Positions 35,177 to 59,357 of a stretch of DNA of 64,000 nt are shown in pieces. Under the pieces are notes generated by a model. The model did not search any database. It had not been told where the DNA came from and saw only the letters and a list, made by a program, of their open reading frames with translations. The stretch is from Paragordius varius (Eukaryota > Animalia > Nematomorpha). Positions within the stretch are counted from its first letter, which is position 1. Every line of letters begins with the position of its first letter. The stretch spans positions 9,796,001 through 9,860,000 of the forward strand of contig OZ176052.1 of NCBI GenBank assembly GCA_964247055.1, written 5' to 3'. The position numbers and the translations under genes are program-made.

Positions 35177-35294
35177 ATGTATTTGCTTAATTATCACCGA
35201 AATCATATTGGCTTAATAGTGTTATTTGTAATATCTTACACCTGTGTGTCATCAACTTCAAAAAGGAATGATCCTACATCCACATTTAAAAAAG
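35177..35294 (+). CDS. Probable first (signal-peptide) exon of the micro-exon gene
   Basis: ATG at 35177 encodes MYLLNYHRNHIGLIVLFVISYTCVSS-TSKRNDPTSTFKK and ends at a strong phase-1 donor (aaag|gtaaat) compatible with the phase-1 acceptor at 38616. Confidence 0.6.
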
Positions 35295-35644
35295 GTAAAT
35301 AATTATTTTCTAAAATTCCATTTATTTTATAAAATTGTGTGATATGGAAGTATTGAATAGGGAATCAGTTTTTTATAAAATCTTAAAAAATTTCTTTGAT
35401 TCTTTATCTCAAATGCCATGAAAGTGGGAACTAAATGAACACCTAATTAATTTAAAATCCTTTGAAGTGTATTTAGTCATAACTTTGGTTGATAAAAACG
35501 AAACAAAGGTGCGTAACAAATTTGGGAAACACCCAAAAGATTTATTTTCATAGAATTAGCTATCGCAAAATCCAAGCAAATACATTTGTCCGTATCTTGG
35601 GATCTCTATAAATATTATTTTGAAAATGTAAAACACTAAATTTA

Positions 35645-35854
35645 CAGTATGCATATTTATGTCGGCCATTTTACATTATTGTTGGCCAATTAGTTACACA
35701 ATAGGGTATAACCAATTTCGTCGAATAAACAAATTAAATGTTGTAAGATAGAAAAAAATTATTTAATTTACACCATTTGTTGTTTTATCCCATACGCTTC
35801 TGTATTGCTAATTCGCCAAAAAATGTGAATTGGCTCACATAAATATGCATACTG
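35645..35854. mobile_element. Tc1/mariner-type MITE
   Basis: TA|CAGTATGCATATTTATGT...ACATAAATATGCATACTG|TA terminal inverted repeats. Confidence 0.7.
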
Positions 35855-35934
35855 TATGCATTCTTAATGCACTTACGGTTTAACAAATTATGTATGCAAT
35901 CTATATTATATTTTTGTATTGTTATAATTTAAAG

Positions 35935-36210
35935 CAGGAATGTTTAACATGCGGCCCGCGGTCAGCATGCGGCCTCCAAAATATGTCTGCGGCCCACGAA
36001 AAATTTTAATTACAACATTTCACCAAATCTAAGTAAAATGGATTTCGTTAAGCAAACTTTCTGAGTCAATCTTTCCATCCAAATTTTGGCAATGATCTAG
36101 CAAATAATATTATATAGTTTTTACAATCGCTAAAAATCCAATAATATATTTGTTAATGCCCATATATTTTGCGAATGCAGTCCGTGAAGCCAGTTATTTT
36201 GGTCACCCTG
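35935..36210. mobile_element. hAT (Charlie/Buster-like) MITE (family H2)
   Basis: caggaatgtttaacatgcggcccgcgg...ggtcaccctg; 8-bp TSD atttaaag/atttatag with central TA. Confidence 0.75.
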
Positions 36211-36701: not shown

Positions 36702-36733
<32 letters not shown>

Positions 36734-36964: not shown

Positions 36965-37008
<44 letters not shown>

Positions 37009-37250
37009 ATTAATTGATATACTGTATGCACATTAATGCCGGTCAATTCACATTATTATTGGACAATTGGTAATACAGCATATGGGTAAAAACAACAAAT
37101 GGGAGAATTACAATTTTTTCCTATCTTACAATATTAAATTTTATTTTATGGACATAATTTGCTTTATATCATACACTACTGTATTACTACTTTCCCTACA
37201 ATAATAAGTTGACCAACATTAATGTGTACACTGTGTTGTGTGCGTGTTAA

Positions 37251-38580
37251 TATACCTTTTACAATTCAAATTCACCCTCGAACGATTCATACTCACCCTT
37301 GAACAATTCAAATTCACCCTAAAAATAAATTATGTGTTTTCGGGCTAATATAACTCATCTTTAATATGAAATATATCTTTACGGCTAGACAACAAATTTT
37401 AACTTATTTTAACTGCCATTCTTGTAAATTTAAAATTTATTTCATTAAAATACATCAATAGTATATCTGAAAAGAAAATTGGTCTAGCATTCAAGAATTT
37501 TTAAATTAAAGTTTATCGAAAATTTTTGGCCCCGATTTAACATTAAACTCGAAAAATGGAAAATTAAAAGATTTAGATATGAAGCCATGTATTTTATATC
37601 CTTCGAAAGAGCGCAAAAAACTGCATTTTTTAAAAAAGTCATTTAAATCAATCGGATGTAAAAGTTTTTTGGATTTAAATGGTCGAAATTTTCAATTCTT
37701 AAATAAGTCAAGAATTTTCACAGACAAACTAATTTGAAAATATAAATTATTTTAATATAATTATTAGGGTTATATTAGTATTTAATTAAAAAAAATGTTT
37801 GAAAAAGCTTTTGTTTGCTTTTTTAATAATTATCATAAATATTTTACCTAGTGGATACTAAAATGCATAGTTATAAATGTAAATTTATTGCATAATGGCT
37901 ATAAAAGATCAAAAATACCTTAAACTTTGTTTTTATCTTTAAAATTTCGAAATTATCAGCCTCGTAAAGAAAATAAATTATTGATGAGATGGTAATTTTT
38001 AAAAAACAAAAAACTTAAAAATAGCAGTTTTGAGTGACATAAAAGCAAATGTTTTAATCAAAAAAAAACTTTCTTGTGTTATCTTTTTTGGACATTCATC
38101 TCCATCTAAACAAAGTTTAAGCTATTTTCATCCATTAGTTTTAAAAATATAATAATTAAAAAAAATGCCCCCGCTTCGCGCGTTTGTCGCTCTTCGTGTC
38201 CAATATTAACTGTCGATGTAATACATATTAGTATGCATTTTATAGAGTGTTTAATACTCTTTCGAATGATTTATTACGAATGGGCATTACTTGTATATCA
38301 AAGAAAAACATTTTTTAGTAATTTGAGAGAGGGCACATAATCATAAAAAATCAAATTATACAAAATTCTTCCATCGAATTATAGTTTTTATTTCAGATTA
38401 GAAAATGCAAAAAACTCGAGTGGCAGAAAAATTTGTTGTCCAGTGTTATAATTAAAAATTTCATTTTTTAAAATATAAAAAATATAAATAATTTTTAAAT
38501 TTAAAAAACACATTAGGGTGAATTCGAATTGTTAGAGGGTGTTGAATTGTTAATGGATGAATTTGAATTGCAATTGTATA
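37251..38580. mobile_element. Foldback element, TATACC-end family, subrepeat type B
   Basis: Inverted arms of ~250 bp beginning with 21-bp repeats (gaacaattcaaattcaccctt-like); left arm homologous to 48060-48140; ends in a TA run. Confidence 0.7.
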
Positions 38581-38615
38581 TATATATATATATATTTATT
38601 ATCAACAATATTAAG

Positions 38616-38919
38616 GGTATGTCACAAATAATTTGAAACAATTTAATGATATCAACAAAGATACAGAGGAAGAAGTACAATCAAATTTAAAATCAAGTAA
38701 TATTATAGTAAACATTTATTTATTTTGCTAATATCCAAACAAAGAGAATATATTAACATAGATTACAGTTAAATAAAATATAGGAAATTTTAAACATTTT
38801 TTCATTTATGTTTTAGTCAGATTGAATCCTATAAACAAGCAAACTCCAAAATTTTCACCAGCCAATTCGACCATTTCCAGTGCAAAGAAAAAATCCAAAT
38901 CTCCCAGGCCAGGTATATT

Positions 38920-38951
<32 letters not shown>

Positions 38952-41900
38952 TAACGCTCGAAATAATATAATTATTGGGGTGATTATTTAGATAAACCCA
39001 GAAAACAAAAAAATAGAAGAGCATCTATGAACAAAACTAATAAACCAAGGAGAGAAAAATCTCGAAAAAGGAACGTAATATCATTAAATAAAACGACCAG
39101 TGGCCCTAAATTATCAGACACAAATGAAAGCAAAATCATTAGTAAATCTCTATAAAAATTTTAATTCGTTGTAAATTTGTTTTTTAAAATAAATTATCTA
39201 AAACGATTGATAAAATTAAAAGATTAAAAATATGTTATCATATCGTGAATCATTCATTTTACATTATTGAATCTTGGACACCATCATTGAATGAATATTA
39301 AATATTTTTCCATTTAATAGATGGACTGAAATTTTATATTTTATTAACTTTAATTCAAGTATAAATATTATTTATATTAACTACCAACAATTACATATTA
39401 TAATCGTAAACATAGAATAAACCGAATATGCATCATATGTGAAACATTTGTCAATAGTAATCGCAGACTAGTTTCTTGCTTGCTGGAAATTACCAGTATT
39501 TATGACACAATATAACTAGGAGTTTTTATATATCAATTTCGTATACAACACGAAACTAGTTGTTTGCGTTTACTGTTGATGAAAGTTTTCACACTGTATA
39601 TTACATTTTTTGTATATTTCCGCTAAATTTACCATTTAATGCATGTTTTCTATAGTATTACAGATACATCATTAATTCGTAAATGAGCATATAATCTTTT
39701 ATTAAAGCTTCAAACGACACAATAGACTTTATTGTCCAGAATGTATCATCCGTATCCTTAAATGAGTCACTCAATATTAATGATACAATGTATAACGATG
39801 GTAGTTGGAATATAACCGACATTATTTTCATCAATAATACTCGAGTAGACCAACTAAATAAAACAGTATATCAGATTACCGCAAATGGTACATCTGATAT
39901 CAACCACAACGATTCTGCAAAAACCAATAATACTAATTATACTACCTATAATAAAACCAATCCTATTCAACACAACACCAACATAACGATAAAATTCCAG
40001 TTGCTTAATGATACGCAAAGTAGGTTAAGATAATCACATGTGCGAAATCATAGGGCCATGTGAATTAGCCTTGATCCGGCATTTCAGAGAAGAGCCGGTT
40101 TAAGTTAACAAAATGTGAATGGTACAAATGACTCTAATAACTTTTATCTCAAAAGATTTACGAATCTTTAGGGCTTAAGCAAATTTTTAAACCTCGTAAA
40201 TAAAAATTGCGAAATTAATTCTGTAAAGTGTAATTTGAATCGGCTTTCCGGCTGATTCACATGACTATATTGTCTTTTAACGCGCTTCAAAAGTCAAAAT
40301 TGATGTTTAATTCATTATAAAAGTGTTTTTGCATTAGAAAATTTAAAATTAAAAAGATTTGTACAAATAACATCATGTAGCACTATTTTCCTAGACCTAG
40401 ATAGTAGCACTTTATTCATATGATTGTTAATTAAAGTTTCATTTTTGGGTAATATTTCGTCGTTGAGACCTGCTATAGAATAATTGACTAAAATGTACTG
40501 CCAAATCATGATCATATACATTTCATGGTTATTGATTTTATTTTAAATATTATATTTTAAAGTTTTGCGGTTGAAAACTCTAGCAAATATATGTGGCGGC
40601 AAATTTTGTATCATGATTTTCATAATTTTTCATTTATTTTTCTATTTTGAATACGACTAAAATCCATTAGTCATAATTCAAAAAATCGCTATGGGGTAAA
40701 TAAATCAAAATTAAGGGTTAAATTACACAGTAACGCGAGCTTTTATAGGCCATTTGGATACATTTTAAATGGTTAAAAGGCGATTTAATTTACATGTCTG
40801 ATACCTGTAAGAGTTTTTATTTTATTGTTGACATATTTAAATGAAAAAGTTTATTTCTTCTCCACAAATTATAAAAATGTAACATATAAACGCAAAATCT
40901 CATACATAGCATTATACAAGTAAATTAGATTCTCTTTTGCCCATTTGGAATACTGAAATGGTCTATGATAGCTCTCATTACAATATAGAATAATTTTAAT
41001 TTAGACCACCTAAATCAAACTATGTATCAATATAATCAAACTCGTTCAACTGATATCAACCATGATCCTTTTGCACAAAACAATAAAAATGTTTTATATA
41101 TTAACTATAATGACACCAGTCCAATTCCATACAAAACCAACATAACGATCGGATTTCATTTGCCTAACGATACCCAAAGTAAATTAATAGGCTAAGAAAA
41201 ATACATACACAAAAAAATATAAGGCCATGTCAATGAGACGGTAGGGTGGCCAAAATAGATCAAATGGTGCAAATGATTGCGATGACTAATATTTTATATA
41301 TTCATATAGATATAGAGATATTAATCGGTTCTCATATATATTTTATGTGGAAAAATCAAGATTTTAAAAACTATAGTTGACTTTTTTAAAAAATATTTGT
41401 CTTTTTGTTTTTAATTGTTTGTAAAAATTCAATTTTTATGCCACCCTTTTTGTGGATCAATAATATTTCTAAATCTTATAATTTTTTTAAATATTGTATG
41501 TTGACCGGCTATTTACATGGTCCTATGAACGAATCAGAGTCGATTCAATGGCTCATTCATATGGCATTGAATAATGTCTTATGTATATTTCTCCTTTCCT
41601 ATTTTAACAAACATTTAATAAATAGCTTATGCGATATTTGTGGATTTATACACATTGTAATATAATAATATGCTGTGCTGGGCATATATGCCAACGTTCA
41701 GATAATGTATAAAATTAAAACACCAAAAATTATAAAATTAAATTTTATTAAATATCGTTAGAATTTTTATGAGCCAAAATGCAAGTTTAAATAAAGGGTA
41801 TAGCAGTAAAGACACTCTTTTTATTAATTTTGGTGTCTTAGGGGCGAAATTGCCGGGCAATGATACAGAAGATTATTATTATGATTATCCTGATGAAGAA

Positions 41901-44900
41901 TATGGTAAATACGTAATATTTTTTAATTAAGCCCATTTCATATTATTTATCGATTAAAATTTGATGCTTTCTATTTAAGTAATGTCGCATTAATATCTGC
42001 AGCCCACGAAAATTTAAAAAAACAAATTTTATTAATAAATCTTTCCAAATTTTGGTAATGAACTAGCAAAAAATGTTAAATTAAATAGTAATTTCAACAG
42101 TCTTATGTTTAAAATTAAAATCTAACAAAATATTCGTAGATGCCAATATATTTTACGAATGCGACCCGCATTTCTTTTGATTAAAAGGCGGCCCGCAAGG
42201 CCATTTGTGTTGGACATCCCTCATTAGAACATTATTTATAATCAGATTAATATATGATTATTTTTAAACATGATAGACTCTTATCTTACATACATAATAA
42301 ATAGTGTTTTTCCTATTTAGAAGGGGTTAATACTATGATTTTTTTAATAAATTTTCTAGTTACAAAATTTTTTGATATTTTTTTGATTAAAATTGTTTCA
42401 CCCAAATATTTCCAATAATTGTTTAGAAGACACTACGGTTCTTAAATCAAATAATTCAGGTATTTCTTAAATATATAGGTGATCACATTGGTTTTCGAAA
42501 TAAATTGGCCATATTCTATCTAATATTATATTATTATTCAATATCCAATTAAGAATCAATATTACAGAATGATGCCATCACATATGAAGGTTATTATCTG
42601 ATTTGAGTAAATAAGTATATTTTAGCAGTAAAAAGGCAAAATGGTAGCTTCAATAATATAGTAATGTAAGCTATTCAGTATGCATTTTAATGGTTGCTTA
42701 TTCCACATTATAATTGGGCTTTCATTACTGTTAGTCAAATGGCAACCAATAGTATATAAAACAATAACAAAATGTTATATAAATTCCAAAAATATTAAAA
42801 TTATTTGTTTTTCAAAAGTAATATGACTTATTAAAAACAACAGTAAAATGTTATAACATAAAAATAAAAGACTAATTTATAAATGAAAGTTTTTTGGTTG
42901 ATTTTTTTATATAACTTATATGATTACAAATGGGAATAAATAACAGATTCACATCTATATTTTCAATTTCACCCAAATTGATGAGTTACATTAACGATCC
43001 AATATTTTTTGGGGTAGTTTTGTATTCCAGAGTTGAAGTTTGAATATCTTAAAAAGTATTTAACGTATTAAATCGAATTTAAAAATATACTTTCTTCAGT
43101 CTTTTGGGTGCATTACACAAATTTTTTTAAAAAAAATGTGAAATTGTAAAAAGTCCTCATCTCAAACCAGACATTTTTTTCTATTTTTTCAAATCGCTAA
43201 TGAAACAGGTAAAAAATGTATAATATGGTCAGAAAATGTAAACAACTTTAAAAAGCTTTTAAGCTACATTTAACAGCAAAAACTTGATATATTTTAATTT
43301 CAATATCAGCTGTTTGTTTCAATCCTGTTTTGGAGCTGTCCCAATTTTAGACTCTAGAAGTCACAAAACTGTAAATAATATAAGCCGTTTTATATAATAC
43401 ATGGTAACAATGTTTGATAATTAAATTTTAACTAAAATAACTTTCAAATTAGTTTATTTACAAAATTGATCTCTGGGATATAATACTACCCCAAAATGTA
43501 AACTAGGAAAAAGTGAAAGCTAAAAAAATAAAAAATGATCATACTATATATTCTTATTAAATATATGAATATTTCTTTTATTTTAAATTTAATTATTAAG
43601 CATTGCTCCTGTATTAGATAAATAACTTATATTTTTTACAATTTTCTATCTCCTTAAATCTTAAATCGGGACAGCTCCAAAACACGATTGGACTAAACAG
43701 CTGATTTTAAAATCAAATTTCGGTCGTAAAATGTAACCTTAAAGCTCAAAGTTAATCATTTACGCTTTCTAACCATAAATATATTTATTTCCATATTTTA
43801 TTTGCGATTCGGAAAAATTCAAAGAAAAAAAACGGCGAAAAAGTTTGAGATAAGAATTTTTTAACAATTTTATTTTTTTAAAAAAATTATGAAGCATCCG
43901 CCTTAAAAGCTAAAAAAATCACATTTTGAAGTTTAATTCCATAAATATAAGATTAAAAAATCGCTCTAGGTACTAAAACGTCTGAAGTGTTAACAATAGT
44001 CTATTTTTTTGTATTACAATTTTAATTTTTACCATAAATTTATACAATATTGATGCGAAAATGTTGAGTTTAGGGTTTATAAAATAACACATATAAAAAA
44101 TATTTGTAGATAAGAGTGTTGACAATGAGACTCATACCATAATGACAGGTTTGAAATGATAAATAATTATTTTTATTCGAAAATAATTTGAAATATTTAA
44201 CGCCAAATCAAATGCGATTTTATCATAAATTGTTATTATAGAGAAAAACATAACTACTCCGCTTAAGATTGACAAAGCCACTGATGATGAAGGTTTTAAT
44301 ATTTATTATTGGATAAATTTATACACAATATATAAATGACCACTTATTTTTAATTTGGTTAATTTCAACTAAGTTTTTTTAGAAAAGTTATGGTTTATAT
44401 GAGAACTATTAATATCCAGAATTAGGATACCATCAAAGCACTTCAACACCTACCGAATACCCTTTACCACCAAGTATTTATTGTTTTTACAAGAGGATTA
44501 TAATTATTAAAAATTAAATATACATTTAATAATTTTAATAATAATAAGTTCTATAGATTTCGAATTTTTAACCAAACATATTTTTAGAATAGTTGATTGT
44601 ATAGCAAAAAATATTTACTATTTAAAAATTTTTAATAACTAACAATACACATTCAAATGACATGATTTCAAAATTATATAATTTATAAATTAATATTCGA
44701 TAATAGTGCATTCTTCCTCAAACGGTGGTACAGTAGTCAAATCCGCAAGTATGTTGTATTTAAATTATAACAATAAATTTGTCGCAAATCCAAAAAGTCA
44801 ATATATAACTTCTTGATCATCGGTTGTATAGTCAACTTGACACTTTTTCTTTTCGCTGCATTGTTAACTATTTGACAAAATAAATCTTGAAATTTAAGAA

Positions 44901-47900
44901 AAAATTAAGTGAAATTCTAATATATTATAAATATTGTAAACTATCAAATCAATTTCAGCATTAATTTAAATTTTTTGATATATATAATTAATTTTTGGTT
45001 TTGTTATGGCGTCCTTTTCACTCATAGGGGCACAATTTTTCCAACATCACTTTATGCCCTGGCAATAGTGCTTAAAAACTTCATGAATTCTTAATACAAT
45101 TCATTCTTTACTCTATTGATAAAATGAGACTCTGGCGATACCTTTGTGCAAAAAATTGAAATTTTAATATATTATTTATATTTTCTACCTTATTCACTAC
45201 GTATTTTTATGTTATTCCCATATTCAGTCGTTGGCGGTGGACTTGTTGCAGCTGGTAAAATTACAATCCATTCATTTTATTAATACCATTTTAATTGTCC
45301 TCTTTTGCGATAAAGGCTAAATATATACAAATGTTAAATTAGGTGGCTTACTTGGAACATCAATTGTGCAATCTGGCACTTCTTTAGGAGCAAGTGTCGT
45401 CCCCTCATCGTTGACAGGAGGGACAACGAGTGGTGGATCTTTCGTATTGCAACCGGCTCAAATTCCATCCCCTATGAGTGGACAAGTAGGGGAATCATTG
45501 CAAGATGTTATTGGATTTGCCGTAGAAAATGGTATTTTAGAATACTAGTTTATATACCATTTGCACTTCAAGAGTGTCCTGGAACACTTCAAGTTGGTCT
45601 TTGAACATTTCAAGTTCCTTAAGCAGTTCAAGTTGGTCCTTGAACAGTTCAAGTTGGTCCTTGAAGAGTTCAAGTTTGTCCTTTGGCTTTTTTGTTTGTT
45701 TTTAACTTTTATCAAAATCGTAAATAATTTATCTATTCTATTGTTTTTAACCTATTTTCTATTATTTAAAATAAATTTTAAATTGATATCAACTTTTAAT
45801 CTTTGAAAAATCGTATAGCTATATTAATTTCTTAAAATAATTTTGGATACTTATAAGATAACAAGAAATGAAAAAATATATAAGTTTTCTGGGTTATTAA
45901 TTAAAATTTTTCATTAAAAACATTTAAAAGTTAATAATGTTCAATTGAAAAAAAATAGAGTGAAACAAAAAAGTGGTTTTTAAATAAAAAATTTTATTTT
46001 TAAATGAATAGAAATATAATAAATAAAGAAAAATAGGTTAATAAATAATAAAATAAAAAATAAATGCAAAAATTATGGTTTGAAAAGTTCAAGGACCAAC
46101 TTGAACTGTTTAAGGACCAACTTGAAATATTCAAGGACCAACTTAAAGTGTTCAAGGACACTCTTGAAGTGCAAATGGTATACATTTTGGTCCTAAATTA
46201 AAGACTTCATGTTTACCGACATTATCCTCAAAGTATGAAATCTTGGAACAAACCCTACCCATAAAGACATAAAAAATAAATCAGGGTTGTCACTCTGCTT
46301 TTAGTTTTGGACGCCCCTAAAATGGGTTTGTTTTTGTAAATAAATGCAAAAAAAGGTTGCGTGAAATTTATATATATATATATATATATATTACATCATG
46401 ATATCAAAATAAATATTTATATAATGCATACTTTATTCATTGTATTTTTGGTGGAAACGATATAAAAGTCTTTATAGATATCGTAAAAAATTATAATTAG
46501 ATAATGCTGAATTTTCTCACCTCATAATTTTCGGTCAATAGGTTATTTGTTTTCAATCATCGATTTATAAAAGAAGTTTTAGAATATCTTAAAGCATTTT
46601 TGTACCGTTCGCCCATGCTTTAACATGAAGTACGCTTCAACAAAATTTTGCCAAAAATTAAATAATAAAGCAGCAAAGTACGATTTTAAAAAATATGTCA
46701 AACTAAAAAATTCTTATCGCGCAATCTCAGCATTTTTGCTTTTATTTAAAAAAATTAGCCCATTTAAGGGGGTCAAAAAAATGCTACTTTGGGAGACGAA
46801 AGTATAAAATATTTAAGTTATTATTATAAATATGTTTTTGCTTTTTGAATATGGTTTATAACATAATTTCGTGATATTCTTTGAAATGAAGCATTTAGCT
46901 TTCACCAAAAAAATTTATTTTAATGTGCTCTAATTTTGCGATTTTCCTTTAAGTAATAACCACCACAAGGAAAATAACTTTTTAAAATAAGTGGTAGGCC
47001 CCAAAATCCAAAGGACAAGATAAATGCTGCATTATTTATCAGAATATATATGATTAATCAAGATATTAAGGTAACCCCCACACCCCAGTTCTCCGCCCGT
47101 GTTTATTTAAACGAGTAACTCTAAATTCAAATAATACAAAATATATTTTAAAATTTTTTTGATATCATCTTTCAAAACAACAAATAAAAGGTGTTAGAAA
47201 ACTATAGTTGGTAAGAATCAACGTATAAATAAAACATTTTTGCGAACCGAATGTCAAACATTTAATGATAATTAAAATTTAATAAATAGCATTAACACCT
47301 CAAGGCAATGCTGGTCTCAATGCTGGTGCCGAAATGTCAACTAATGACGGCCTTTCCATAAAAAATATTTTGGATTCAAGTTAATTAATATTATAAATCA
47401 ATATATAATATATATGGTATAAATTTATGTAATTACATTCATTTAGGTCCTCAAGGTATATTTAATTAATTAATTGTGTAAAGTTCCCAGTGCCGTTTCC
47501 CGGGAAGGTAATATTTATACCTCTTGAAATTTATACTGTTTTATATTTCTCAAAAATATATATAACTTAGCTGTCGCTGAAATCGGAGGAAAATCCGTTA
47601 TAAAGGCAAACGGTGAATTTTTTAAATATATATTTTCTTTTATTTACAAAATATAATCTGGATTATAAATGAATATTTACATTCAGTTATGCTGAAATTT
47701 AATGGGAACTTAATATTTTTGCTGTATAAATAGAATCAATATCGATCTTGTAGAAAAAGTGTTTTATAATGGTTTTACTGTTTCCAATATGGTTTAAAAT
47801 ACCAATTACTACAATTTATCCAACGCCAGTATATTAATTTTTTATACAAAGGTTTTTCCCAAAAATAATTGTTATGTAGTTAAAGATATATTTATAATAC

Positions 47901-50900
47901 ACATACTCTTTTGATTTTAACAAAAATATTTTAAAAGCTTAGGGGATATTTTGTAGGATAATGGAAGTTATCAAACATTTTTATATTATGAAAACATTCT
48001 AACCAATTAAGGGCTGCTGAATATTTCTATCGGTCCAATTTTTGACAAATTGAAGTTAATATACCATTTGCAGTTCAAATTCACCCTTTACCAATTCAAA
48101 TTCGCCCTAAAAATTAATTATGTGTTTTTGAACTAATATACATCTATATATTAAAAATGGAAAATGCTGGCTTTGTGATCTGATACCGGAAAACCGGTAG
48201 ACCCATTCAAATCCAAAAGATAAAATATAATCATTAATGAATGCCCCGACAATAGCTTCGCCCTTTTTTTGAAATAGGCCCCCAGTTCGGGACCACCCAC
48301 CGTGTGAAAAACGTTTTTTTTTGAAAACACGAGTCCACAAAAATCGTGTCTTTGAGACAATTTTCTGGAGAACGTGGTGGACCATTCAATTTTAAATATA
48401 ATTTTTGTTTACTTATCTTCGATTGCCCCGAACATAGTCGTCTCGCTTTTTTGATTTAGGCCCTCTTTTTACCCGCTCCCCCCGTAAAATGCCATTTTTT
48501 TCAAAAAACAAAGTCCACAAAAATAATTTTTGAAATCTATTTTTCGCCCTAGGCATGAGACCGTAAAAATTCACGTATTTTCTGTTAAAAGGCAAAAATT
48601 CTAGTCAAGCGTTTCTTTGATGATAGCTACTGGGTAAGGAGCTACCCGCTAAAAACTGATTCCTCATGTAACTTTGTGATCTGTTACCGGAAAACCGAAC
48701 CCAATCAAATCCAAATATAGAAAAAATATAATCATAAATAAATGTCCCGACAATAGCTTCGACCTTTTTTGGAATTAGGTCCCCAGTTCGAGCCCACCCC
48801 GTGTGAAAAATGGGTTAAGTCAATTTTTTGGAGAACGTGTTGGACCATTCAATTTCAAATATTATTTTTGTTTACTTATTTTTGATCGCGCTGAACATAG
48901 TCGACTCACTTTTTTGATATATGCCCTCTTTTTACCCGCTACCCCCGAAAATGCCTTTTTTTCAAAAAGCAAAATCCACAAAAATAATTTTTTAAATCTA
49001 TTTTTCCCCAAGTAAACAATATATTAGTATGAATGCACCGTTTTAAAATTCCTATAAAATCATATTTAAATAATGTTTCGAAATAATCCACATATGTGGA
49101 TCATTTTATTGTCCCTTATTTCAAATAGCCCCCCCCCCCCCCCCCCCCCCCAGAAGTCCGTAGGACTTCCTCGTGATGCGTAGCAGCACGAGATTTACGC
49201 TAGTTATTAATATAAATAAAGTATATCTTTATGGCAAAGTTTATTATTTTTTCAGTATTATTTGAATTTAAAACAAAATTTTTTTTAAAAAAATTATAGG
49301 TAATTTGTAATTTTAAAAAACATATAATTTATTTGAGGGTGAATTTGAATTGTTTGAGGGTAAATTTAAATTGTTTAAGGGAGAATTTGTATTGTAAATG
49401 GTATATATTTTGAAACGCAATGCCAATATTTGAGATTTAAGGAACATTTTAGGCATATTATGTAAAAACAAAATAGTTTGGCAAGTTCAATTGGTGTTTT
49501 ACAACCAAATGAGCAAGTTTTTAAATTTACTAATAAGCCACCTGAGCAAAATACGTTTAGAATCCTGATAAAAAAAATTTCTATCAGAATCTGAATATTT
49601 CATATAGTTAATTTTTATTTGAAATGAGTTTTTACAATAGCTGACCAATTGAGATAGTTTCGAGATCTAATTACACGAAATTAAATTCACAGTTAGAACC
49701 AGGAATATATATTGTATTATTGTGCTTCAGGTTTTTGAGCAATTTTTTCAATAACTAAAAGACAATGCAAAATTAGTGATAATAATTCTGCATTAGCAAT
49801 TCATAGTTTTATCATAGTTATATATATTTTTGATAAGCTAGATTAGTCTACCATCACTAACACATAATTAAGTATTACATTTATAACTTGCGTATAGGTG
49901 TTATTTCCTAAACTAATTGTACCCAATCATGAGTATTAAGCTGAGGATATTGGGCAAATGAAAAGATTATGAAATACTGTTTTAAATTTGATTTATACCA
50001 AGAAAATAAAGCATTGGTTTTGTATCATACACGATTCAATCATGATTATTGTTTAAGTTCTAAAATTTTAATTAGAAATGTTTTTTGTTAGGTGGTGCAC
50101 AAAAATCTGCATTAGCCTCGTTTGCGGGATCGTCAGCCGGATTCGCTGGAAGGCCTACTGTTATTCAACATGGACAATCCTCAGGTAAAAAAAGATACTA
50201 CTTTAGATGTTCTTTTGTTAGGATAGCGCTTTGAACTATCCCCCTTTTCTTTTTTTACCCATTCATATTTGATATTTTACAGAATATAAGTTCCAAAAAT
50301 ATATAGAGAATAAAATTTAGCATATTATTATATATAGGAATAAAATCGTTTTGCTAGTGCAAAAAATTAACGGAATATTTAGATTGAATAATATTCCATG
50401 GCCTAAGCAGAAGAAATGTCATGTTTTATAATGTTTCAGACCAACTTTAATTTTGAATTTTATCATATTGGTTGGTATCCAGTTATGTTATGTGCATCTG
50501 TGCGCCTGTCTGGTCGCTTTCAAAATGCAATAAAAAAATACGTTTATATAAACGTATGGCATATATATTATGAGATAAAAAATATTAAAAAAAAGATTTT
50601 ATGCTATTTATTTATCGTCAACATATTATCTTATACACACAGTGGATCAACAAACCCCACAGAGGGACTCAATTTTGGGTAAAATATATAATATGTTGAC
50701 AAAATGCTTCCAATTTCCTAGAAGGTCTATTGAGAGATGAAACCTCGTACAGATCAGATAACCCAACACATCAAAATCAACAAGGTAATATACAACATAT
50801 ACCATTTGCAGTTCAAGAGTGTCCTAAGTTGGTCCTTAAAATTTTAAGTTGATTAAACCATAAATCATGTATTTTTTTATTTCATCTTTTTTTATAAATG

Positions 50901-53823
50901 TTTTTATTGAAAATTGCAATTAATAACCCAGAAAACTTTTTTTACTATTACTGGTGTAAATTTTATAAAAAATGATATATATTTTAAGAACTTACACTGT
51001 TTCTGAATGATCAAAAGTCGATATTGATTTAAAAGTTTGGTTATATCAGGAGAATAGGTTAAAAATAATAAAATATATTAATGATATACACGGTTTGATT
51101 GATGATAAAAGTTAAAAACAATTTAAAAAAGTTGAAGGTATAACTTGAAACAAAGACTCTCTTGAAATGTTTAAGGACCAATTAAAGTGTTCAAGGATAC
51201 GTTTGAAGTGCAAACAGTAAAATCCCCGTTTCCATAATTTTTAAACTTAATATATTATTGGTGTCAATGATATTTATTTGGTATTATCATTTTTTATTTT
51301 TGTTAATATCTTTTTAAAGGGGATTTTGTCTTTAGGCTAATTCTTGGATTTTACTACACATATGAACGGAATATATTTTATGATCATTTATTAATTAATA
51401 TGCACATTTTGTATTTAGATGTGACACCCGATCCGATACAACCAAAAACAGAAGGTAATGATAAATTAACCTTTAAACAACTTCTAATTAGTTGATTCAC
51501 CCGAAACAGATTATTTTCAACCTATGGAGACAGTCATACCTCAAACGGCACCCCCGAGCGACTTGGGTAATGATAAAGTTTAACTCATGATGTATTTATA
51601 TTCAATCTATATTAAGGTGAACAGAAATAAAACATAATATTCTAAACATTATGTACCAAATTAAGGGTGCTAGGAATCCATTTTTTACATAATATTTATA
51701 CATAATTTGAAAACACTGAAATACTCAGATAACATATTGTACAAGATTTGTTTTGTTGTATTTTGGGAATTTAATCAATTAATTTTTATAGGATCGAGGA
51801 ATTTCATTCATTTTTTGGATATTTATAAATTATAAGTTATTTGCTGTAAAACACATTTTTTATAGATTTCGATATTGATCTCATAAATCAAGGAATGTCA
51901 GATATTGAAGGGATTACGGGTACATAATTTTGGCGATATCTTTTCCTAGATATTTTTTTGGCGACACCATTAAAGTTTATACTAATAAAGTATATTAATT
52001 TTGATATATCAAGTTTTACATCGTGTTTATTAAAAATTATAATTTTTTAACTCCTATTATCTGATATTAATTTAATGTAATAGACGAGCTTTTTAAGCTC
52101 CTCAAATTTTAAAGTTTTAAAAATCATCAAAAATAACCAATCAATACCAACCTACGAGCTTGTGGCCAATAATTTTGTTAAAAGAATTTATTATATTCAA
52201 AAATATTGGTTCTGGTTTACACAATACATAATTGCAGAGTCTAAAATAAAAAATTAAACTTCAGGATTGTTGGTAAAGACAGAGCATATACAGATGCGTA
52301 GCTAGAGGGGGGAAGGTGAACTAATTCACCGGGCGCCATATTTAAAGGGGTGCCGGATTTTAATTTTTATTATCTTATTTCAAAAATTAGGTATTTTAAG
52401 ATTATTATTTTACATAATAAATAAAAAAAATCATCTATAGAATGGTCATGATCACGTTTGAATTTAATTATTTTAAAAATGTGAGGGGCGCCAGTAATGC
52501 AAGCTATGCCTCTGAGTAGATAATTTAAAATATTTATTAACAAATATTTCATAAGGAATGTAATATAATTTATATTTAGGTGATATGAACTTTAACCTGG
52601 ATAATTTTGATATACCCGGTATATTTTGATAAAAAAACAAAACTTAATTTAAAATTTATCGCGTTTTTTATATAAAAATTATATTTAATCTAATCATATT
52701 AAATGACAAAATCATAAATTTTTGAATTAAATATTAATTTCACAATTTGTAGCAAATCAACCTATGCAACAAGCGCAAAATCCATTTCCCTCACAACAAA
52801 CGGAACAACTCCCGCATCACCAAAGTTTATTTTACTTATTGATAATATCTTTAATATAAGTTTTAAAGTTGTTTGTAAATGTTTCTCCCAATCTAATTTA
52901 CTGAATGCATGACATTCCATTTATTGTGGTTGGAAATAGAAATATAATATAACCAACGCTTAAAATATGTATAAGTACGTGTGATTATAAGTATAGGTTA
53001 ACACTCCAATACAAATCAGGATTTAAAATAACTCAAATAAATATTTCATTGAGTACTTTTAAAAGAATGTATGGGAAATAGAGGTTAAACAATAGTAAGG
53101 TGATTGGTATATCTAGATGGCACTTTTGATACGGGAAATACTTGGGCTGAAATACTGTAGTAACATTAAATGATGTCTGCAATCTCGATAACGTACGTTT
53201 TTTTGTGGTTTAAGTTTCTGATCTTCTTGTTGACGTTTCGGTTCATATGTTTTCGATTACATACAATTATTCAGTTTAAGTTTAGTTTCATCGCATAAAG
53301 CTGTTTCTTTATTGATTCCCGTAAGAGTATGTGTTTTTTGAAAAAAATCTTCATGTGTTACGGTGTGGGAATGAAGATTATTATTGAAAAAATACGTATC
53401 ATATAAAACATAATTAATATATATTATCACACAATAATTTAAAAACTTAAAATTTTTTGGCTCCAAATAATGTTTTTGAAATCCATCGAATTTCACTCTT
53501 TACAACATAATAACAACTAATATAACGAAACAAACCGTTTATATAAAATTAACATAATATTCAAATTGGTGTGAGATCATCATACGTATTGTATATGTAA
53601 AAAATCAAGCCTATTTTTTCAAAAAACTGCTAAAAAATTGAATTGTGTATTTTTTATGGTCTAATAAGAAAATGTGTGATACCTTTCATTTTTTAAATCA
53701 ATTTATAGATTATCAATCCAATACTCATGGAGAAAGTAGCAACACTCTTAGAGGTAAATAACCAATTAACACGTTAAGATTCAACCAATGAAAGAACAAT
53801 GGATATAAATCATCCATTGACAA
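38616..53823 (+). CDS. Core of an orphan secreted low-complexity glycoprotein gene made of symmetric phase-1 exons and micro-exons
   Basis: GT-AG exons, all multiples of 3 nt with no stops when joined: 38616-38696, 38817-38912, 38992-39141, 39708-40019, 41005-41178, 41842-41904, 42427-42459, 42554-42589, 44110-44148, 44242-44292, 44420-44473, 44707-44748, 45228-45254, 45343-45531, 47063-47098 (weaker), 47290-47379, 47447-47455, 47484-47507, 47571-47612, 50092-50184, 50643-50678, 50722-50784, 51419-51454, 51510-51566, 51866-51919, 52580-52618, 52753-52824, 53709-53753, 53779-53823. The exons stand out as GC-richer islands. No family recognised. Confidence 0.75.
41995..42222. mobile_element. 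5'-truncated copy of hAT MITE family H2
   Basis: Colinear similarity to 35985-36210; right end gcggcccgcaaggccatttgtgttggacatccc. Confidence 0.6.
43008..43990. repeat. Complex palindromic repeat, with a partial inverted copy at ~18135-18410
   Basis: ~43080-43350 is the reverse complement of ~43660-43960 (ttttggagctgtcc / ggacagctccaaaa); 18135-18410 matches 43250-43515 in reverse orientation. Confidence 0.6.
45553..46182. mobile_element. Foldback element, TATACCATTT-end family, subrepeat type A
   Basis: The first 28 nt of both arms are exact reverse complements (tataccatttgcacttcaagagtgtcct), followed by 21-bp repeats gaacacttcaagttggtcctt. Confidence 0.85.
48143..49203 (+). mobile_element. 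Non-autonomous Helitron
   Basis: 5' A|TCTATATATTAAAA; 3' hairpins (gaagtcc-gta-ggacttc; ctcgtg...cacgag) then CTAG|T; no TSD. Internal direct duplication 48171-~48550 / 48672-~49010. The joined flanks resemble the uninterrupted sister element near 37345-37380. Confidence 0.8.
49129..49151. repeat. Poly-C tract (23 nt)
   Basis: Read directly; sits immediately 5' of the Helitron terminal hairpins. Confidence 0.95.
50798..51219. mobile_element. Degenerate foldback element, TATACCATTT-end family, type A
   Basis: Left end tataccatttgcagttcaagagtgtcct; degenerate right end gttcaaggatacgtttgaagtgcaaa; internal similarity to 45553-46182. Confidence 0.7.
52291..52514. mobile_element. hAT-type MITE (family H1)
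   Basis: TIRs cagatgcgtagctag / caagctatgcctctg; 8-bp flanks agcatata/agtagata; shares the internal aggggtgccg.attttaat motif with 1613-1803. Confidence 0.7.
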
Positions 53824-53954: not shown

Positions 53955-56900
53955 GTGTCGTGGGTTAAACCTAATGAAAATTTTAATTTATTTATTTAAT
54001 TTACGATACCCCATCTATACATTAATTTTTTTATGTTTACATTGATATTGAAAAATCATAATTAAAGAAAATATATCAAACGCAAAAGTTTCACCCTTTC
54101 TTTTTGAATTAATTTCAATTTTTCATCTTAATTATATTTTTATTTTTGAATAATAATTGGATTTAGATGGATTAAATCAAAGTATAAATAAATTTAATCC
54201 TTTACATATCAGTTAATCAATTGGAGCATGGTAAATTTTAACTGTTTCATTTTATATGTTTGGTAATAAAATTTGAATATGTGGTTTAACGCAAAAATTT
54301 GTTTTATCAGAGTATAGAACCATAAAGAGATGTAAATTTTGCTTTTTGTAAATTTACCCTAAGTATATAAAATTAAAGATTTTATTCCATAATAAAATCA
54401 AACAATTTATATACAAAATTATGTTTCCAAATTTTTTTGAGAGGATAAATATTTTTTTTAAATATTTTATGGATAACTTTATTGCAATGTCATAAAGCAA
54501 TACAGAACTTACGACAAGGTAAAATAGTTAATCATCCCATAAGGCAATATTTTGATGTACATTTTCATCTTGCAAAAACAATATTTCTTAAATAATAAAT
54601 CAAAGGTTTCCAAATGTTCGGTTCAATATACAATATAATAAAAGGGTTTAAAACGCACAAGTTTTTTCTATAAAGTGTAACAACAATAAATTTGAAAGTA
54701 TATTAGTTAATCTAGTTAAAGGGTACAGAATATACCCAAATATGTAAACACTGGTTGTGCGACTTCAATTTCCGTTTTAGTCAAACCTAATAAGCAGAAA
54801 AGTCGTTTAAATGCAGTTATAAATTGAAACATACAGACAAAATGTAAAAACTAAAGGGCTAATATTTTGTTTAAAAAGCACCCACACTTTTATGTTAATT
54901 TATTATAGCATATCGTTTTAGATAATATAGTAAATTGTTAACACTCTCAATTATATTAATTTAATAATTTGATTAAATAGAGGTTTAAAATATGGTCTTT
55001 AAAAATATATTTAGTTTTGACGGTTTGCATAATTTCTTTTCTCTATTTAAAACACAAATTTTTGAAATAGATTTGATCAAATAAATATAGATGGGCAGCT
55101 GAACATAATTAATATAAGAACTAAGGCGCTTTTTTAATACGCTATAGGATTTCAAAGAGATGATATCCATGCTGTGCTATCTAGTAAACATTAAGCTCTC
55201 GGTTTTTTTAATGAGCGTGAATGTATGATTAAGAATCCAAATTAAGATCGAAACACCTCTCACGCGATGAAGTGTTTTGGGTAAGATGGATAATATATTA
55301 TAACTATCGGAGGCGCTAGAATTTTTACTTTTGTTTTATACTGAGACACGTTCAATCAAATTTTATTTTTTAAATAAAAGCGTGTACATCAAATTTATTT
55401 CTCATATATTTAGTTTAAATTGGTATGTTAACTGAACCGTTGCATAAAACTGCAATTAAAAATGTGTGGTTTATAGAAAGAATTTAAAAGTTGCTTTTCT
55501 AAAACCCTTTTTTCTGGTCGGATTCTTGAAAATTGTTTTAAAACTGTTTCTAAACAGTGTTTGCTCACTTTCCTCAATATTTCCAAAAAGCTCTTACCAT
55601 TTAATCTTTGTATTTGAAAAGCAGGCTTTTAATTCAATCTAAATCAAGGAATTGTTATATATTTTACCATTTTAAAGTTTATAAAATGTGATAATTTACT
55701 AATTGGATATTTATTTATAATATTTAAGCAACCGGTTTAGGTATAAATTATTTGATTATTGTAAACTTAGCTCAAAATTATTTACAGCGAGGTAATCTTT
55801 AAAATTATATAATTTAAACCTATCTTATTAGGACAAGACATAACTGGTATTTCCATTCTATTACATATATAAGTTTAATGTTACATGATATTTTGTTTCA
55901 ATAGCATATAGCAATTGAAAAATGTGTTATATATAATTTCTGGTTAAAATGGTTGAAAAATATATTCTAGCTTTCATAAAATAAAATAATGGTTCCTTGA
56001 GGTTCAGTGTTTTTATATAATATTTTTGCAAAACATAATGACTTAATGGTAAGAAATGGACATAATTCGTTCATTAATAGACTAATGTTAAAATAATAAA
56101 ACATAAGAAAGTGACCTGGCTTTAGAATCCAAATAACAAATAGTGACAATGTTTTTGAGGCAATAGCAAATAAAATTATATTAAACAATCCCTCGTTTCT
56201 ACAGAATGTAAAACGTTTAAATTTATTTATATAGGCAAAAAGTTGAAAAGAGTATTAGTATTGTACAAACAATTAAAATGCTTGTGATTCATTTCGTTTC
56301 GATATCATGAGAGTGAGGCGATTAAAATGCAAAATCAGTTTTTTTAATTGTTATTAAATTGTTTTCTATTATATTGATGATTTTGTCATAAGGATTTTGA
56401 TAATTAAAATATTAAATAGAGAATTTTTTGACCGTATTTGTATTGGATAATAAATTTTTAATTATGACTTGTTTAAGAAACAAAAAATATTCAAAAGGCT
56501 ATCTTTTTTATCTTTGGATACCAAACAAGTTGTTAATCAGTTGTTTTTATTTTATAAAAGATATTTATTGGAAAAATAATGGTTTATTAATTTATCACCA
56601 ATAATTTTGCATTTTCTATATTAATAAACGAGGTTTTGAATTTTGTCATATTATCCGACGATTGGAAACATTAAAAAATTATAAAAAGTTAACCGTTTTT
56701 CCGCTTCTAAAGTTAGGGGCCCAAAATGATGTATAGATACCACATAAACCTTAAATTTCACGCTCTTTTAATATGTTAAATTTATTTTTATTATAAACAC
56801 ATTAAGCCATTAATCAAGGTTGGTATTAATTTAAATATGTAAAATAAATATAAATTATATAAAATATAAATTTAATCAAGTTGTTCAACAAGAATTAACA

Positions 56901-59259
56901 AGTAAATTATGATTTAAAATTATAATTCTATCAGATGTAAAACAATTAACCCAAAGTATATTTTAACACTTGGAAACAACACATTTCAGTCCTTCGATTT
57001 GAATTGAGGTAGTTGGATACCCCAGGCCTATTTAAAATTAAATACTTCAAAAAATATGGAAGGAATTAAAACCATGGCAAAGGTTTGCACTTATATAACA
57101 TTAATGAACCGAAATATAATAAAAAATCTATTCAAAAATACTTGATATTATTTATTCAGAGGTAAAATCCAAAGGTAAAAATTAAGCCAATGCAAAATAA
57201 ACCACTTTTATATACCATTTTTCATGCAAAAACATCATTTTTTTAACCAAATGCAACATTTTTTCACCAAACTCAACATTTTTTCAAGCAAACGCAACAT
57301 TTTTTCAAGCAAAGACAATATTTTTTCGAACAAACGCAACATTTTTTCAAGCAAAGACAACAATTTTTCAAGCAAACGCAACATTTTTTCAAGCAAAGAC
57401 AATTTCGAGCAAAGACAACAATTTTCAAGCAAACGCAACATTTTTTCAAGCAAACGCAACATTTTTTCAAGCAAAAACAACAATTTTTTTAAAAAATAAT
57501 AACCCTTTTTTTTATTTTAAGGCATATTAAATTTAAAGTTTATGTAAATTAATTTTAGCGTAGAATTATGATTTTTATTGTTTTATCATCAATATTTGAT
57601 GGTATGATTGATTTTCAAACATTTTAATTTAGCCCAAAAATTGCATTATTTATTTATATTAATTATTTTTCCTTTTGCAACTTAAGTTTCACCTAATCAA
57701 TCTATACTGCGCTTCAAGATTGTTCTTTTAAATTTAAACTTAGTCCTAGAACACTTCAAGTTGATCCTTCAATATTTTAATTTTAATTCTAACGTTTATT
57801 AATGACGCAATAAAATATTCATTATTTAATCATTTAAACCTATTTTTTTATTTAACCTAAACTTTTTAGTGAATACATTTATTTCATGAGAACCGTATAT
57901 CCTTATTATTTTGTATAAATTAATATTATAAATTTCTACGTTTTGTGGGTTATTAATGGAAATATTTAGTTTAAAACAATAATAAATTTATAATATTGAT
58001 AAATTAAAGAAAATTTTCAAACAAAGTTGTTTTACTATGAAAATATTAATTTTGATTTAAAAACTAATAAATAGAGTTATCAGTTTAAATTTAAAAAATA
58101 GATATTTACACACAAAAATAACGGTTGTATGGAAACTGCAAAAAATGTATTTAAAGCGAAGGATATCTTTAAATTTTTAAGGAGAGTCTTTAAGTGCAAA
58201 TTGTATTGAATGATAAAAAAAAATATTTATAAATAAATAATGCAATTTATGGGCTAAATTAAAACGTTTGAAAATCAATCATACCATCAAATATGATGAT
58301 AAAACAATAAAAATCATAATTCTAGTCTAAAATTAATTTACATTAATTTTAAATTTATGTCTTAAAATAAAAAAAAATGGTTTTTTATTTTAAAAAAATT
58401 GTTGTTTTTGCTTGAAAAAATGTTGTTGTTGGTTGAAAAAAAAGTTGCGTTTGGATGAAAAAATGTTGTCTTTTGTTGAAAAAATGTTACGTTTGCTTGA
58501 AAAAATGTTGCGTTGTCTTTGCTTGAAAAAATGTTGCCTTTGCTCGTAAAAATGTTGTCTTTGTTTGAAAAAATGTTGCGTTTGCTTGAAAAAATGTTGA
58601 GTTTGGTTGAAAAAATGTTGCATTGGAAAATGATGTTTTTGCATGAAAAATGGTATATCTATATTAAATGTGGTATTAATAAAATAATTTTAGTTTTAAA
58701 ATTATATAAACATGACATTTTGCCTAAATATTGTAAAATAAATTGCGTCGAGGATATTTGATATGAAACTTTTTTTTAAAACTAAATTGAAGCCTAAATT
58801 AAAATTGGGATAGTTTCTTTCAGTAATTTCTTAATATCAACTATAATATAATCCGGGGTATTTAGATGCCCCATTTTGAATCGAAGTGTGGAACAAATAT
58901 ATAATTTTGTTATAAACATACATCAACCATTTTGTTATATTTAGATATTGAGACGCATTGGTCAAGTAAATTTAATTCAAATATAATTATTATTAATTAT
59001 ATTAATTTAGACCTTATGCAACAACAACATAGTAAATTATATATACACATACTTTATAGACTAAATTATTTTTTGGTATTATTGTTAATAAGAATTATAT
59101 TCTTGTATTAATATCATAAATAGGAATCCATAAAAATTAATATTCTTTAAAGTGTGTGATTAATTTAAATAATAAATAGACCCATCGTTGAGTGGACCAC
59201 CAATGTCAAACTTTGGACAAAATGCACCATGTATTTGTTTTATAAAACAACCTTCATTT

Positions 59260-59331
<72 letters not shown>

Positions 59332-59357
59332 ATTGTATATTATTTATAGTTAAATAA
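53955..59357 (+). CDS. 3' micro-exon tail of the same gene (9-51 nt exons)
   Basis: Candidate phase-1 exons 53955-53963, 54167-54181, 54213-54230, 54311-54331, 54498-54518, 55729-55740, 55771-55791, 55832-55846, 58945-58965, 59011-59031, 59180-59230, then a possible terminal TT AAA TAA at 59350-59357. Very short exons can arise by chance in AT-rich DNA. An earlier stop (54214-54216) is possible if 54167 is read as a terminal exon. Confidence 0.5.
57211..58657. mobile_element. Foldback element, TATACCATTT-end family, subrepeat type C, ~450-bp arms
   Basis: Arms 57211-~57665 and ~58215-58657 are highly similar reverse complements, each with about ten 21-bp units (caagcaaacgcaacatttttt); the centre holds a degenerate type-A element (~57703-58206). 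Confidence 0.85.
59264..59324. repeat. (AT)n microsatellite, ~30 units; shorter runs at ~9015, 9945, 16911, 31633, 36703, 36968, 38577, 38922, 46370, 60758
   Basis: Read directly from the sequence. Confidence 0.95.

Follow-up and report, generated by a model that had tools for sequence, protein, structure and literature searches.

In a 64,000-nucleotide stretch of the genome of the horsehair worm Paragordius varius (assembly GCA_964247055.1, contig OZ176052.1, forward-strand positions 9,796,001 to 9,860,000; hereafter the window, numbered from its first letter), we rebuilt a candidate micro-exon gene on the + strand, running from an ATG at 35177 to a TAA at 59355-59357. The rebuilt model has 37 exons, namely a signal-peptide exon, 35 internal GT-AG exons and a short terminal exon, which give a coding sequence of 2235 nt and a product of 744 aa. 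Every one of the 35 internal exons is a multiple of 3 in length, phase 1 and free of stops. They measure 9-312 nt (median 42, mean 60), with 26 of at most 63 nt, 16 of at most 36 nt and 11 of at most 24 nt, and in the final model the exons are 38% GC versus 25% for the introns, which span 28 nt to 3.5 kb. The 5' half consists of ordinary exons of 27-312 nt. In the 3' half, exons of 9-93 nt are spaced either by introns of 28-45 nt or by kb-sized introns filled with elements resembling miniature inverted-repeat transposable elements (MITEs). A preliminary description of this DNA had placed the start of the signal-peptide exon, its phase-1 donor (35294|GT) and the stop exactly where we find them, and its chain of symmetric, phase-1, stop-free exons with a smallest member of 9 nt also stands. 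Its counts were too high: the 40 internal exons, 31 of at most 63 nt and 18 of at most 36 nt, and the product of about 800 aa become 35, 26, 16 and 744 aa.

The exons are listed below. GC is given as exon versus flanks, splice sites are scored in bits with locally trained matrices, and the any-phase model and the micro-exon test are described after the list.

35177-35294, + strand: exon 1, ATG and signal peptide, 39 codons plus 1 nt; phase-1 donor G|GTAAAT at 35294.
38817-38912, + strand: exon 2, 96 nt, where the Lys/Arg-rich block begins; GC 0.40 versus 0.09; acceptor 6.2, donor 7.8 bits.
38992-39141, + strand: exon 3, 150 nt, Lys/Arg-rich with dibasic sites; phase 1 is the sole open frame, and the any-phase model keeps it at every penalty.
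39708-40019, + strand: exon 4, 312 nt, rich in Asn sequons (14 in 103 aa, far above shuffled expectation); the longest open frame of the locus.
41005-41178, + strand: exon 5, 174 nt, duplicated in tandem from the 3' part of exon 4.
41842-41904, + strand: exon 6, 63 nt, acidic Tyr cluster; acceptor 7.4, donor 4.6 bits.
42427-42459, + strand: exon 7, 33 nt; acceptor TTTAG, donor CAG|GTATTT.
42554-42589, + strand: exon 8, tentative, 36 nt; AAG acceptor at -0.1 bits, picked by the model at low exon penalty only.
44242-44292, + strand: exon 9, tentative, 51 nt; acceptor -0.8 and donor 1.6 bits, both weak; GC 0.37 versus 0.19.
44426-44473, + strand: exon 10, 48 nt, Ser/Thr/Pro block; GC 0.44 versus 0.20; acceptor 5.0, donor 4.3 bits.
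44707-44748, + strand: exon 11, 42 nt, Ser-rich; GC 0.45 versus 0.15.
45228-45254, + strand: exon 12, 27 nt, first part of a Gly/Ala/Val hydrophobic segment; GC 0.59 versus 0.24; acceptor 5.4, donor 5.3 bits.
45343-45531, + strand: exon 13, 189 nt, remainder of the hydrophobic segment and a Gly/Ser/Thr block; GC 0.47 versus 0.24.
47290-47379, + strand: exon 14, 90 nt, Gly/Ala/Asn block; outside the training set and still picked by the any-phase model; GC 0.40 versus 0.11.
47447-47455, + strand: exon 15, 9 nt, the smallest, reading TTTAG|...|GTATAT; donor 6.6 bits; GC 0.56; passes the phase-blind micro-exon test.
47484-47507, + strand: exon 16, 24 nt, preceded by a 28-nt intron; GC 0.62 versus 0.21; donor 5.1 bits, AAG acceptor.
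47571-47612, + strand: exon 17, 42 nt; GC 0.45 versus 0.12.
50092-50184, + strand: exon 18, 93 nt, Gly/Ala/Ser block; acceptor 8.7 bits (the best of the gene), donor 6.2; GC 0.51 versus 0.20.
50643-50678, + strand: exon 19, 36 nt, Gln/Pro block; GC 0.47.
50722-50784, + strand: exon 20, 63 nt, preceded by a 43-nt intron; phase 1 is the sole open frame.
51419-51454, + strand: exon 21, 36 nt; acceptor 7.6, donor 5.2 bits.
51492-51566, + strand: exon 22, 75 nt, preceded by a 37-nt intron; GC 0.48 versus 0.21.
51866-51919, + strand: exon 23, 54 nt, acidic; acceptor TTTTATAG, donor 5.2 bits.
52580-52618, + strand: exon 24, 39 nt, acidic, outside the training set; acceptor 6.8 and donor 5.7 bits, both in the top 1% of background sites.
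52753-52824, + strand: exon 25, 72 nt, Gln/Pro-rich; GC 0.44 versus 0.14.
53709-53753, + strand: exon 26, 45 nt; acceptor 5.0, donor 5.0 bits.
54167-54181, + strand: exon 27, 15 nt; passes the phase-blind micro-exon test.
54213-54230, + strand: exon 28, 18 nt, preceded by a 31-nt intron; donor 5.7 bits; passes the micro-exon test.
55729-55740, + strand: exon 29, tentative, 12 nt; AAG acceptor at -1.3 bits; the alternative is a single 63-nt read-through exon, 55729-55791.
55771-55791, + strand: exon 30, 21 nt, preceded by a 30-nt intron; passes the micro-exon test.
55832-55846, + strand: exon 31, 15 nt, preceded by a 40-nt intron; the top-scoring micro-exon, with donor 4.0 and acceptor 3.3 bits.
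56935-56955, + strand: exon 32, 21 nt; passes the splice test, with no GC contrast (0.24 versus 0.24).
57160-57174, + strand: exon 33, 15 nt; donor 5.5, acceptor 0.5 bits.
58945-58965, + strand: exon 34, tentative, 21 nt; donor 5.3 bits; acceptor matrix score -6.0 despite reading TATTTAG.
59011-59031, + strand: exon 35, 21 nt, preceded by a 45-nt intron; passes the micro-exon test.
59180-59230, + strand: exon 36, 3' boundary tentative, 51 nt; GC 0.45 versus 0.17; weak donor T|GTATTT at -2.8 bits.
59350-59357, + strand: terminal exon, tentative, 2 nt plus one codon plus TAA; acceptor TATTTATAG; gives the end coordinate of the preliminary description.

Between 35.3 and 59.4 kb, 521 segments lie between an AG and a GT, are a multiple of 3 in length and are open in phase 1, and the other eight classes of length and frame hold 415-486 segments each. 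With so many segments fitting the bare chaining rule, the ability to chain 40 of them is no proof of a gene. We therefore relied on further tests chosen so that reading frame plays no part. A generic metazoan donor/acceptor matrix was useless in this genome, where local donors read G|GTAWWT without a G at +5, and matrices of the intron side only held too little information. Instead, donor and acceptor matrices were trained on 19 exons of at least 27 nt from the gene together with the splice sites of the aldolase gene further along the window.

In the simplest of these tests, each strong donor (G|GTAW) was paired with the upstream YAG acceptor of best GC contrast. The resulting exons divide 13:1:2 by length modulo 3 on the + strand, compared with 4:4:2 on the - strand. 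All 16 clear exons are open in the phase-1 frame, and the other frames are open in only about half of them each. We then scored AG..GT pairs of 6-26 nt, accepting those with a donor of at least 2 bits and an acceptor of at least 1 bit. On the + strand of the gene the passing pairs divide 8:0:0 by length modulo 3. With the acceptor threshold lowered to 0 bits, the split becomes 10:2:0 for the full span and 10:0:0 for the 3' half alone. In five control regions no length class had more than 2 pairs, and the pairs were scattered over all classes. The passing pairs of the gene all lie in the 3' half, at 47.2-59.4 kb.

Finally, we used dynamic programming to build a gene model in which every intron phase is allowed. 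This any-phase model attains 283.6 bits; 33 of its 37 exons are symmetric, and among exons outside the training set the symmetric fraction is 14 of 18. The controls (the reverse complement, another region and five block-shuffles) reach 20-33 bits with 8-15 exons, about one third of them symmetric. The any-phase model contains two groups of asymmetric exons. The pair 46759-46801 and 46992-47098 compensate each other's frame within a GC-rich stretch and have no other support, and the exons at 48779-49172 were rejected as they fall inside a foldback/MITE insertion with a poly-C run.

The codon structure of the exons points the same way. G occupies codon position 1 at a frequency of 0.30 in exons of 27-63 nt and 0.22 in those above 63 nt, whereas positions 2 and 3 have 0.11 in either class, and the eleven exons of at most 24 nt follow the same trend weakly. 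Furthermore, five of the seven introns shorter than 50 nt are not a multiple of 3, so their removal is needed to preserve the frame. The 28-nt spacer before exon 16 is a case in point, as it is not frame-neutral and must be spliced out. These seven introns of 28-45 nt between small exons (47456-47483, 50679-50721, 51455-51491, 54182-54212, 55741-55770, 55792-55831 and 58966-59010) are very AT-rich, the 28-nt intron having about 14% GC.

Taken together, these results bear on whether the chain arose by mere selection among the many AG..GT segments of AT-rich DNA. Such an origin would fit the number of segments that meet the chaining rule, which is scarcely above that in other frames, and the little information that intron-side splice signals carry in this genome. 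For the bulk of the chain it is contradicted by all of the phase-blind tests and their controls, and it is almost certainly not the explanation. About 21 exons of at least 27 nt are convincing one by one, and nine micro-exons are supported as a class. The preliminary description had warned that the smallest exons might be chance matches. For the class, the 8:0:0 split against scattered controls speaks otherwise; for single exons the warning holds, and 42554-42589, 44242-44292, 55729-55740, 56935-56955 and 58945-58965 could be chance matches.

We regard six parts of the model as tentative: 42554-42589, 44242-44292, 55729-55740, 58945-58965, the donor of 59180-59230 and the 8-nt terminal exon. 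The 3' end has two alternatives, a read-through of a (TA)n tract that stops at 59323-59325 and an end at 60338-60363, which the any-phase model prefers. A last exon reading through the (TA)n tract all the way to 59357 is ruled out by the frame stop at 59323-59325. The tract itself, at 59257-59325 just before the last acceptor, would translate to an Ile-Tyr repeat if the weak 59230 donor were unused, and another (TA)n microsatellite follows the exon 2 donor directly, at 38913-38945.

Among start exons from 34.0 to 59.4 kb, exon 1 alone has both a strong hydrophobic core and a good phase-1 donor while lying outside any transposon; a signal-peptide-like open reading frame at 49094 was rejected because it sits in the transposon of intron 17. 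By heuristic reading, the peptide of exon 1 starts with a basic n-region, continues with a hydrophobic core of 11 residues and has V-S-S just ahead of the likely cleavage site. The rest of the protein is a succession of compositional blocks in the order given by the preliminary description: a Lys/Arg-rich block with seven dibasic sites, an Asn-rich block, an acidic Tyr cluster, a Ser/Thr/Pro block, a Gly/Ala/Ser block, Gln/Pro and acidic blocks, and a Gln/Leu/Lys tail. The mature part has an isoelectric point of 5.6 and a grand average of hydropathy of -0.83, and it is free of Cys, the only Cys of the precursor lying inside the signal peptide. The mature protein is hydrophilic and probably largely disordered, with an Asn region that appears beta-prone. 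The acidic context of the Tyr cluster in exon 6 makes it a possible tyrosine-sulfation motif.

N-glycosylation sequons are far more frequent than composition predicts. Residues 27-368 hold 26 sequons versus 9.7 ± 2.6 in shuffled sequences, none of 5000 shuffles reaching 26, and the Asn block alone has 19 versus 6.2 expected. Past residue 392 there are none, where 3.8 are expected (P = 0.016). The excess is a functional signal that is independent of gene finding. Judged by these features, the product most likely enters the endoplasmic reticulum and is secreted, with heavy N-glycosylation of its N-terminal half.

Between the two halves of the protein lies a hydrophobic segment, aa 374-392 (AIVGGGLVAAGGLLGTSIV), which may allow a different fate. 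If this segment were a transmembrane helix, the product would be a type I membrane glycoprotein, with a glycosylated, sulfated, mucin-like N-terminal half outside the cell and the micro-exon half as a disordered cytoplasmic tail. The mean Kyte-Doolittle hydropathy of its 19 residues, 1.82, exceeds the classical cut-off of 1.6, a Ser/Thr/Pro stalk stands immediately N-terminal of it, and all 26 sequons precede it. A parallel exists in the window, where a cytoplasmic disordered loop of a phosphate transporter is likewise built of phase-1 exons, and products of schistosome micro-exon genes may also be membrane-anchored. Against insertion, the segment contains 6 Gly, 1 Ser and 1 Thr, no basic residues follow it and a lone Lys precedes it, and a sum by hand of the Hessa biological scale values comes to about +2.3 kcal/mol, which is unfavorable. 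We consider membrane anchoring unlikely, though it deserves to be kept in mind.

The boundary near this segment also bears on whether the locus is one gene. When the exon 13 donor is unused, the frame stops at 45546-45548, 15 nt beyond the donor, which would end a protein of about 448 aa and leave the exons from 47290 onward to another transcript or to a set of alternative 3' exons. A 1.76-kb intron separates the two parts, and the micro-exons are all downstream of exon 13. However, no start exon with a usable phase-1 donor exists between 45.5 and 47.3 kb, the downstream exons carry on in the exact phase left by the exon 13 donor, and their composition and codon periodicity are identical to those upstream. 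A division into two units is thus very unlikely.

One pair of exons records how the gene has changed. The stretch 39833-40068 aligns with 40989-41237 at about 75% identity, and the alignment extends into the start of the intron. The last third of exon 4, along with the start of the intron after it, was duplicated in tandem to give exon 5, whose acceptor derives from former exon sequence. The encoded proteins align over 56 aa with their sequons kept. Apart from this pair, the exons are single-copy within the window.

Repeats fill many of the introns. Foldback/MITE-like elements occupy the long introns at 37250-38570, 43293-43717, 45553-46182, 48074-49406, 50800-51219 and 57200-58650. Subrepeats of 21 nt in tandem, in which motifs such as CAAGTTGGTCCTTGAACAGTT and CAAGCAAACGCAACATTTTTT occur, make up their inverted arms, and one arm family is common to elements 11-12 kb apart. 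The insertion in intron 17 is the most elaborate:

48074-49406, no strand assigned: foldback/MITE-like insertion within intron 17; it contains a tandem duplication and a poly-C run, shares its inverted terminal arms with 37250-37352 and carries direct repeats D7 and D11.

Within it, 48218-48530 and 48719-48993 belong to two tandem copies of a unit of about 460-500 nt that are 79-84% identical. On the minus strand each unit has an open frame for about 70-90 aa; a stretch of about 22 C comes next, at 49129-49150.

We looked for relatives of the protein using exons 4 and 13, each as contiguous DNA. An exhaustive HMMER search of 1.84 billion representatives with exon 4 returned one spurious match only, to a chitinase-like repeat protein (E = 7e-5). 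Word-index protein searches with exons 4 and 13 were blank, and five exons gave nothing above threshold in Pfam. A neighboring open reading frame, looked up by exact match, was not on record. A control word-index search with an exon of the transporter loop was equally blank, so the blank searches do not bear on expression.

Several of our results weigh against the gene model. Because 19 exons of this gene served for training, their model scores are inflated. The evidence for six exons and for the 3' end is weak. No transcript, homologue or domain turned up, and nothing external backs the model. An AlphaFold single-sequence model of exon 4 is uninformative, with a predicted local distance difference test (pLDDT) score of 36.5, and the ratio of nonsynonymous to synonymous substitution between exons 4 and 5 is 0.75, showing little visible constraint. 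With these points counted, we still consider it likely that 35177-59357 on the + strand is one intact, lineage-restricted protein-coding gene of about 37 exons, with an orphan, signal-peptide-led product, that grew by frame-neutral exon accretion.

We propose that the gene probably grew within an ancestral phase-1 intron that followed the signal-peptide exon, as frame-neutral cassette exons were added or duplicated there. The duplication that gave exon 5 would be one such growth event. A cassette exon that is added or duplicated inside a phase-1 intron must be 1-1 to be phase-compatible, and because of this rule accretion behind the signal-peptide intron would yield a chain of 1-1 exons. The exons are probably recognized through their GC contrast (38% versus 25% in introns), and the same process or bias is probably at work elsewhere in the genome, for example in the transporter loop.

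The rest of the window supplied a control for the symmetry. The window has 23-33% GC and is clearly animal in character. The published assembly of another horsehair worm, Gordionus montsenyensis, has 26.9% GC and 63.8% repeats, mainly DNA transposons, which matches this genome at 26% GC and rich in MITE-like DNA transposons. Besides the micro-exon gene, the window holds a class C G-protein-coupled receptor gene at 1-2800, a PiT/SLC20 phosphate transporter gene at 17.2-28.6 kb, and a class I aldolase gene whose first coding exon lies near 61.65-61.78 kb and which continues to the window end. Under the same phase-blind model, the variable central loop of the transporter (21230-25076, + strand) consists of eight consecutive phase-1 symmetric exons of 81-222 nt, each a long open frame with G|GTA donors. 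In the aldolase gene (62661-63924, + strand), phase 1 is found in three of the four readable introns, the donors again follow G|GTAWWT without the +5 G, and one intron is 63 nt long. The preliminary description had cautioned that phase 1 is common in the conserved genes here, and these two genes make that caution a serious one.

Part of the bias may be traced to the donors. They favor G at -1 (24 of 36), and G makes up 25% of codon position 1 versus 11% of positions 2 and 3, but the -1 preference alone predicts phase 1 for only about half of the introns, not for all. As the transporter loop has the same all-phase-1 symmetry, symmetry alone is no mark of exon shuffling here. Our observations suggest a genome-wide tendency to build disordered regions from 1-1 exons, and selection for exon shuffling accounts for the symmetry less well than does this genome's way of building disordered coding regions.

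Exon symmetry would nonetheless make frame-preserving skipping possible. In its strongest form, this idea makes the gene a generator of diversity, in which the symmetric micro-exons are cassettes skipped in many combinations to produce secreted variants at the host-parasite interface. All 35 internal exons are frame-neutral, so that any subset could be skipped without a frameshift; as a class, the micro-exons of 9-24 nt are real; the product is an orphan led by a signal peptide, and the gene evolves under little constraint; the animal is probably a parasite; and the micro-exon genes (MEGs) of schistosomes use exactly such a layout for splice variation (PMC4350168). On the other side, the same symmetry in the cytoplasmic loop of a neighboring housekeeping transporter needs no diversity function, exons of at most 36 nt hold only 16% of the coding sequence, and a product of 744 aa is several times the longest MEG product (189 aa). 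We therefore find combinatorial skipping a doubtful reading of this locus. A broader proposal strikes us as rather improbable: horsehair worms would have independently evolved a large micro-exon-gene repertoire for exported proteins that annotation has missed, this locus being a composite member, with phase-1 cassette accretion acting genome-wide and combinatorial skipping varying those molecules that come into contact with the insect host.

Should RNA bear out the model, horsehair worms would join flukes and aphids as a third lineage of animals that encode exported proteins in micro-exon genes, and would be another parasitic one. Whether this layout is an adaptation for diversity, or only a by-product of the way introns and exons originate, would then become a sharper question. 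The transporter is an internal control within the window that favors the by-product answer, and it makes the diversity reading testable here. Exons of 9-24 nt and introns of 28-45 nt also defeat standard gene finders, and as a result such genes would be missing from hairworm proteomes and might add to the apparent gene loss in these animals. In the published annotation of Gordionus there are only 10,320 genes, and BUSCO completeness is 71.6%.

The preliminary description had likened the locus to the MEGs and suggested that such a splicing system might be undescribed in the organism; on the second count, our literature search found no paper linking micro-exons with Nematomorpha. MEGs are defined by a signal peptide, a coding region that lies mostly in very small symmetric exons, and splice-generated variants (PMC4350168, PMC4699917, 2023 re-annotation), the small exons being 6-36 nt, or up to 81 nt in the 2023 re-annotation. 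Like the schistosome MEGs, the present gene has a signal-peptide first exon (by heuristic reading) followed by symmetric multiple-of-3 exons, here 35 of 35, many of them tiny; those of MEGs go down to 6-9 nt and lie between much longer introns. The orphan, fast-evolving and disordered nature of the products is shared as well. The likeness does not extend to the share of small exons, since those of at most 36 nt make up 360 of 2235 nt (16%) and those of at most 81 nt 1005 nt (45%), nor to sequence, as the HMMER search with exon 4 found no relative and Pfam no match in five exons. Many introns between micro-exons are also just 28-45 nt here, and the phylum is another one, MEGs having been reported as restricted to platyhelminths.

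A second point of comparison is the bicycle genes of aphids, whose proteins were reportedly named by Korgaonkar et al. in 2021 for paired CYC (Cys-Tyr-Cys) motifs. Bicycle genes encode a signal peptide and have many micro-exons, nearly all of which begin at codon position 2; they have diverged too far to be found by sequence search, and the very large megacycle gene has more than 100 micro-exons and about 2000 aa (PMC9168663). Their exon phase 2 corresponds to intron phase 1, as found in all 35 internal exons here, and megacycle is comparable in scale. The CYC motifs are absent from our Cys-free mature protein, there is no sequence similarity, and the lineage differs.

Closer at hand, the PiT/SLC20 loop shares phase-1 symmetric exons for a disordered, fast-evolving region, the same splice-site style and the same GC contrast. 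It differs in having no micro-exon and in being part of a conserved membrane protein that is not secreted. The VAL-6 gene of Schistosoma mansoni has a conserved SCP/TAPS domain where none is detectable here, and it is composite, with a micro-exon tract joined to ordinary exons (PMC4350168), much as the present gene is ordinary in its 5' half and micro-exonic in its 3' half. We conclude that the gene resembles a micro-exon gene in layout only and stands outside the MEG and bicycle families, and that, by analogy of structure, its nearest counterpart would be a composite gene such as S. mansoni VAL-6.

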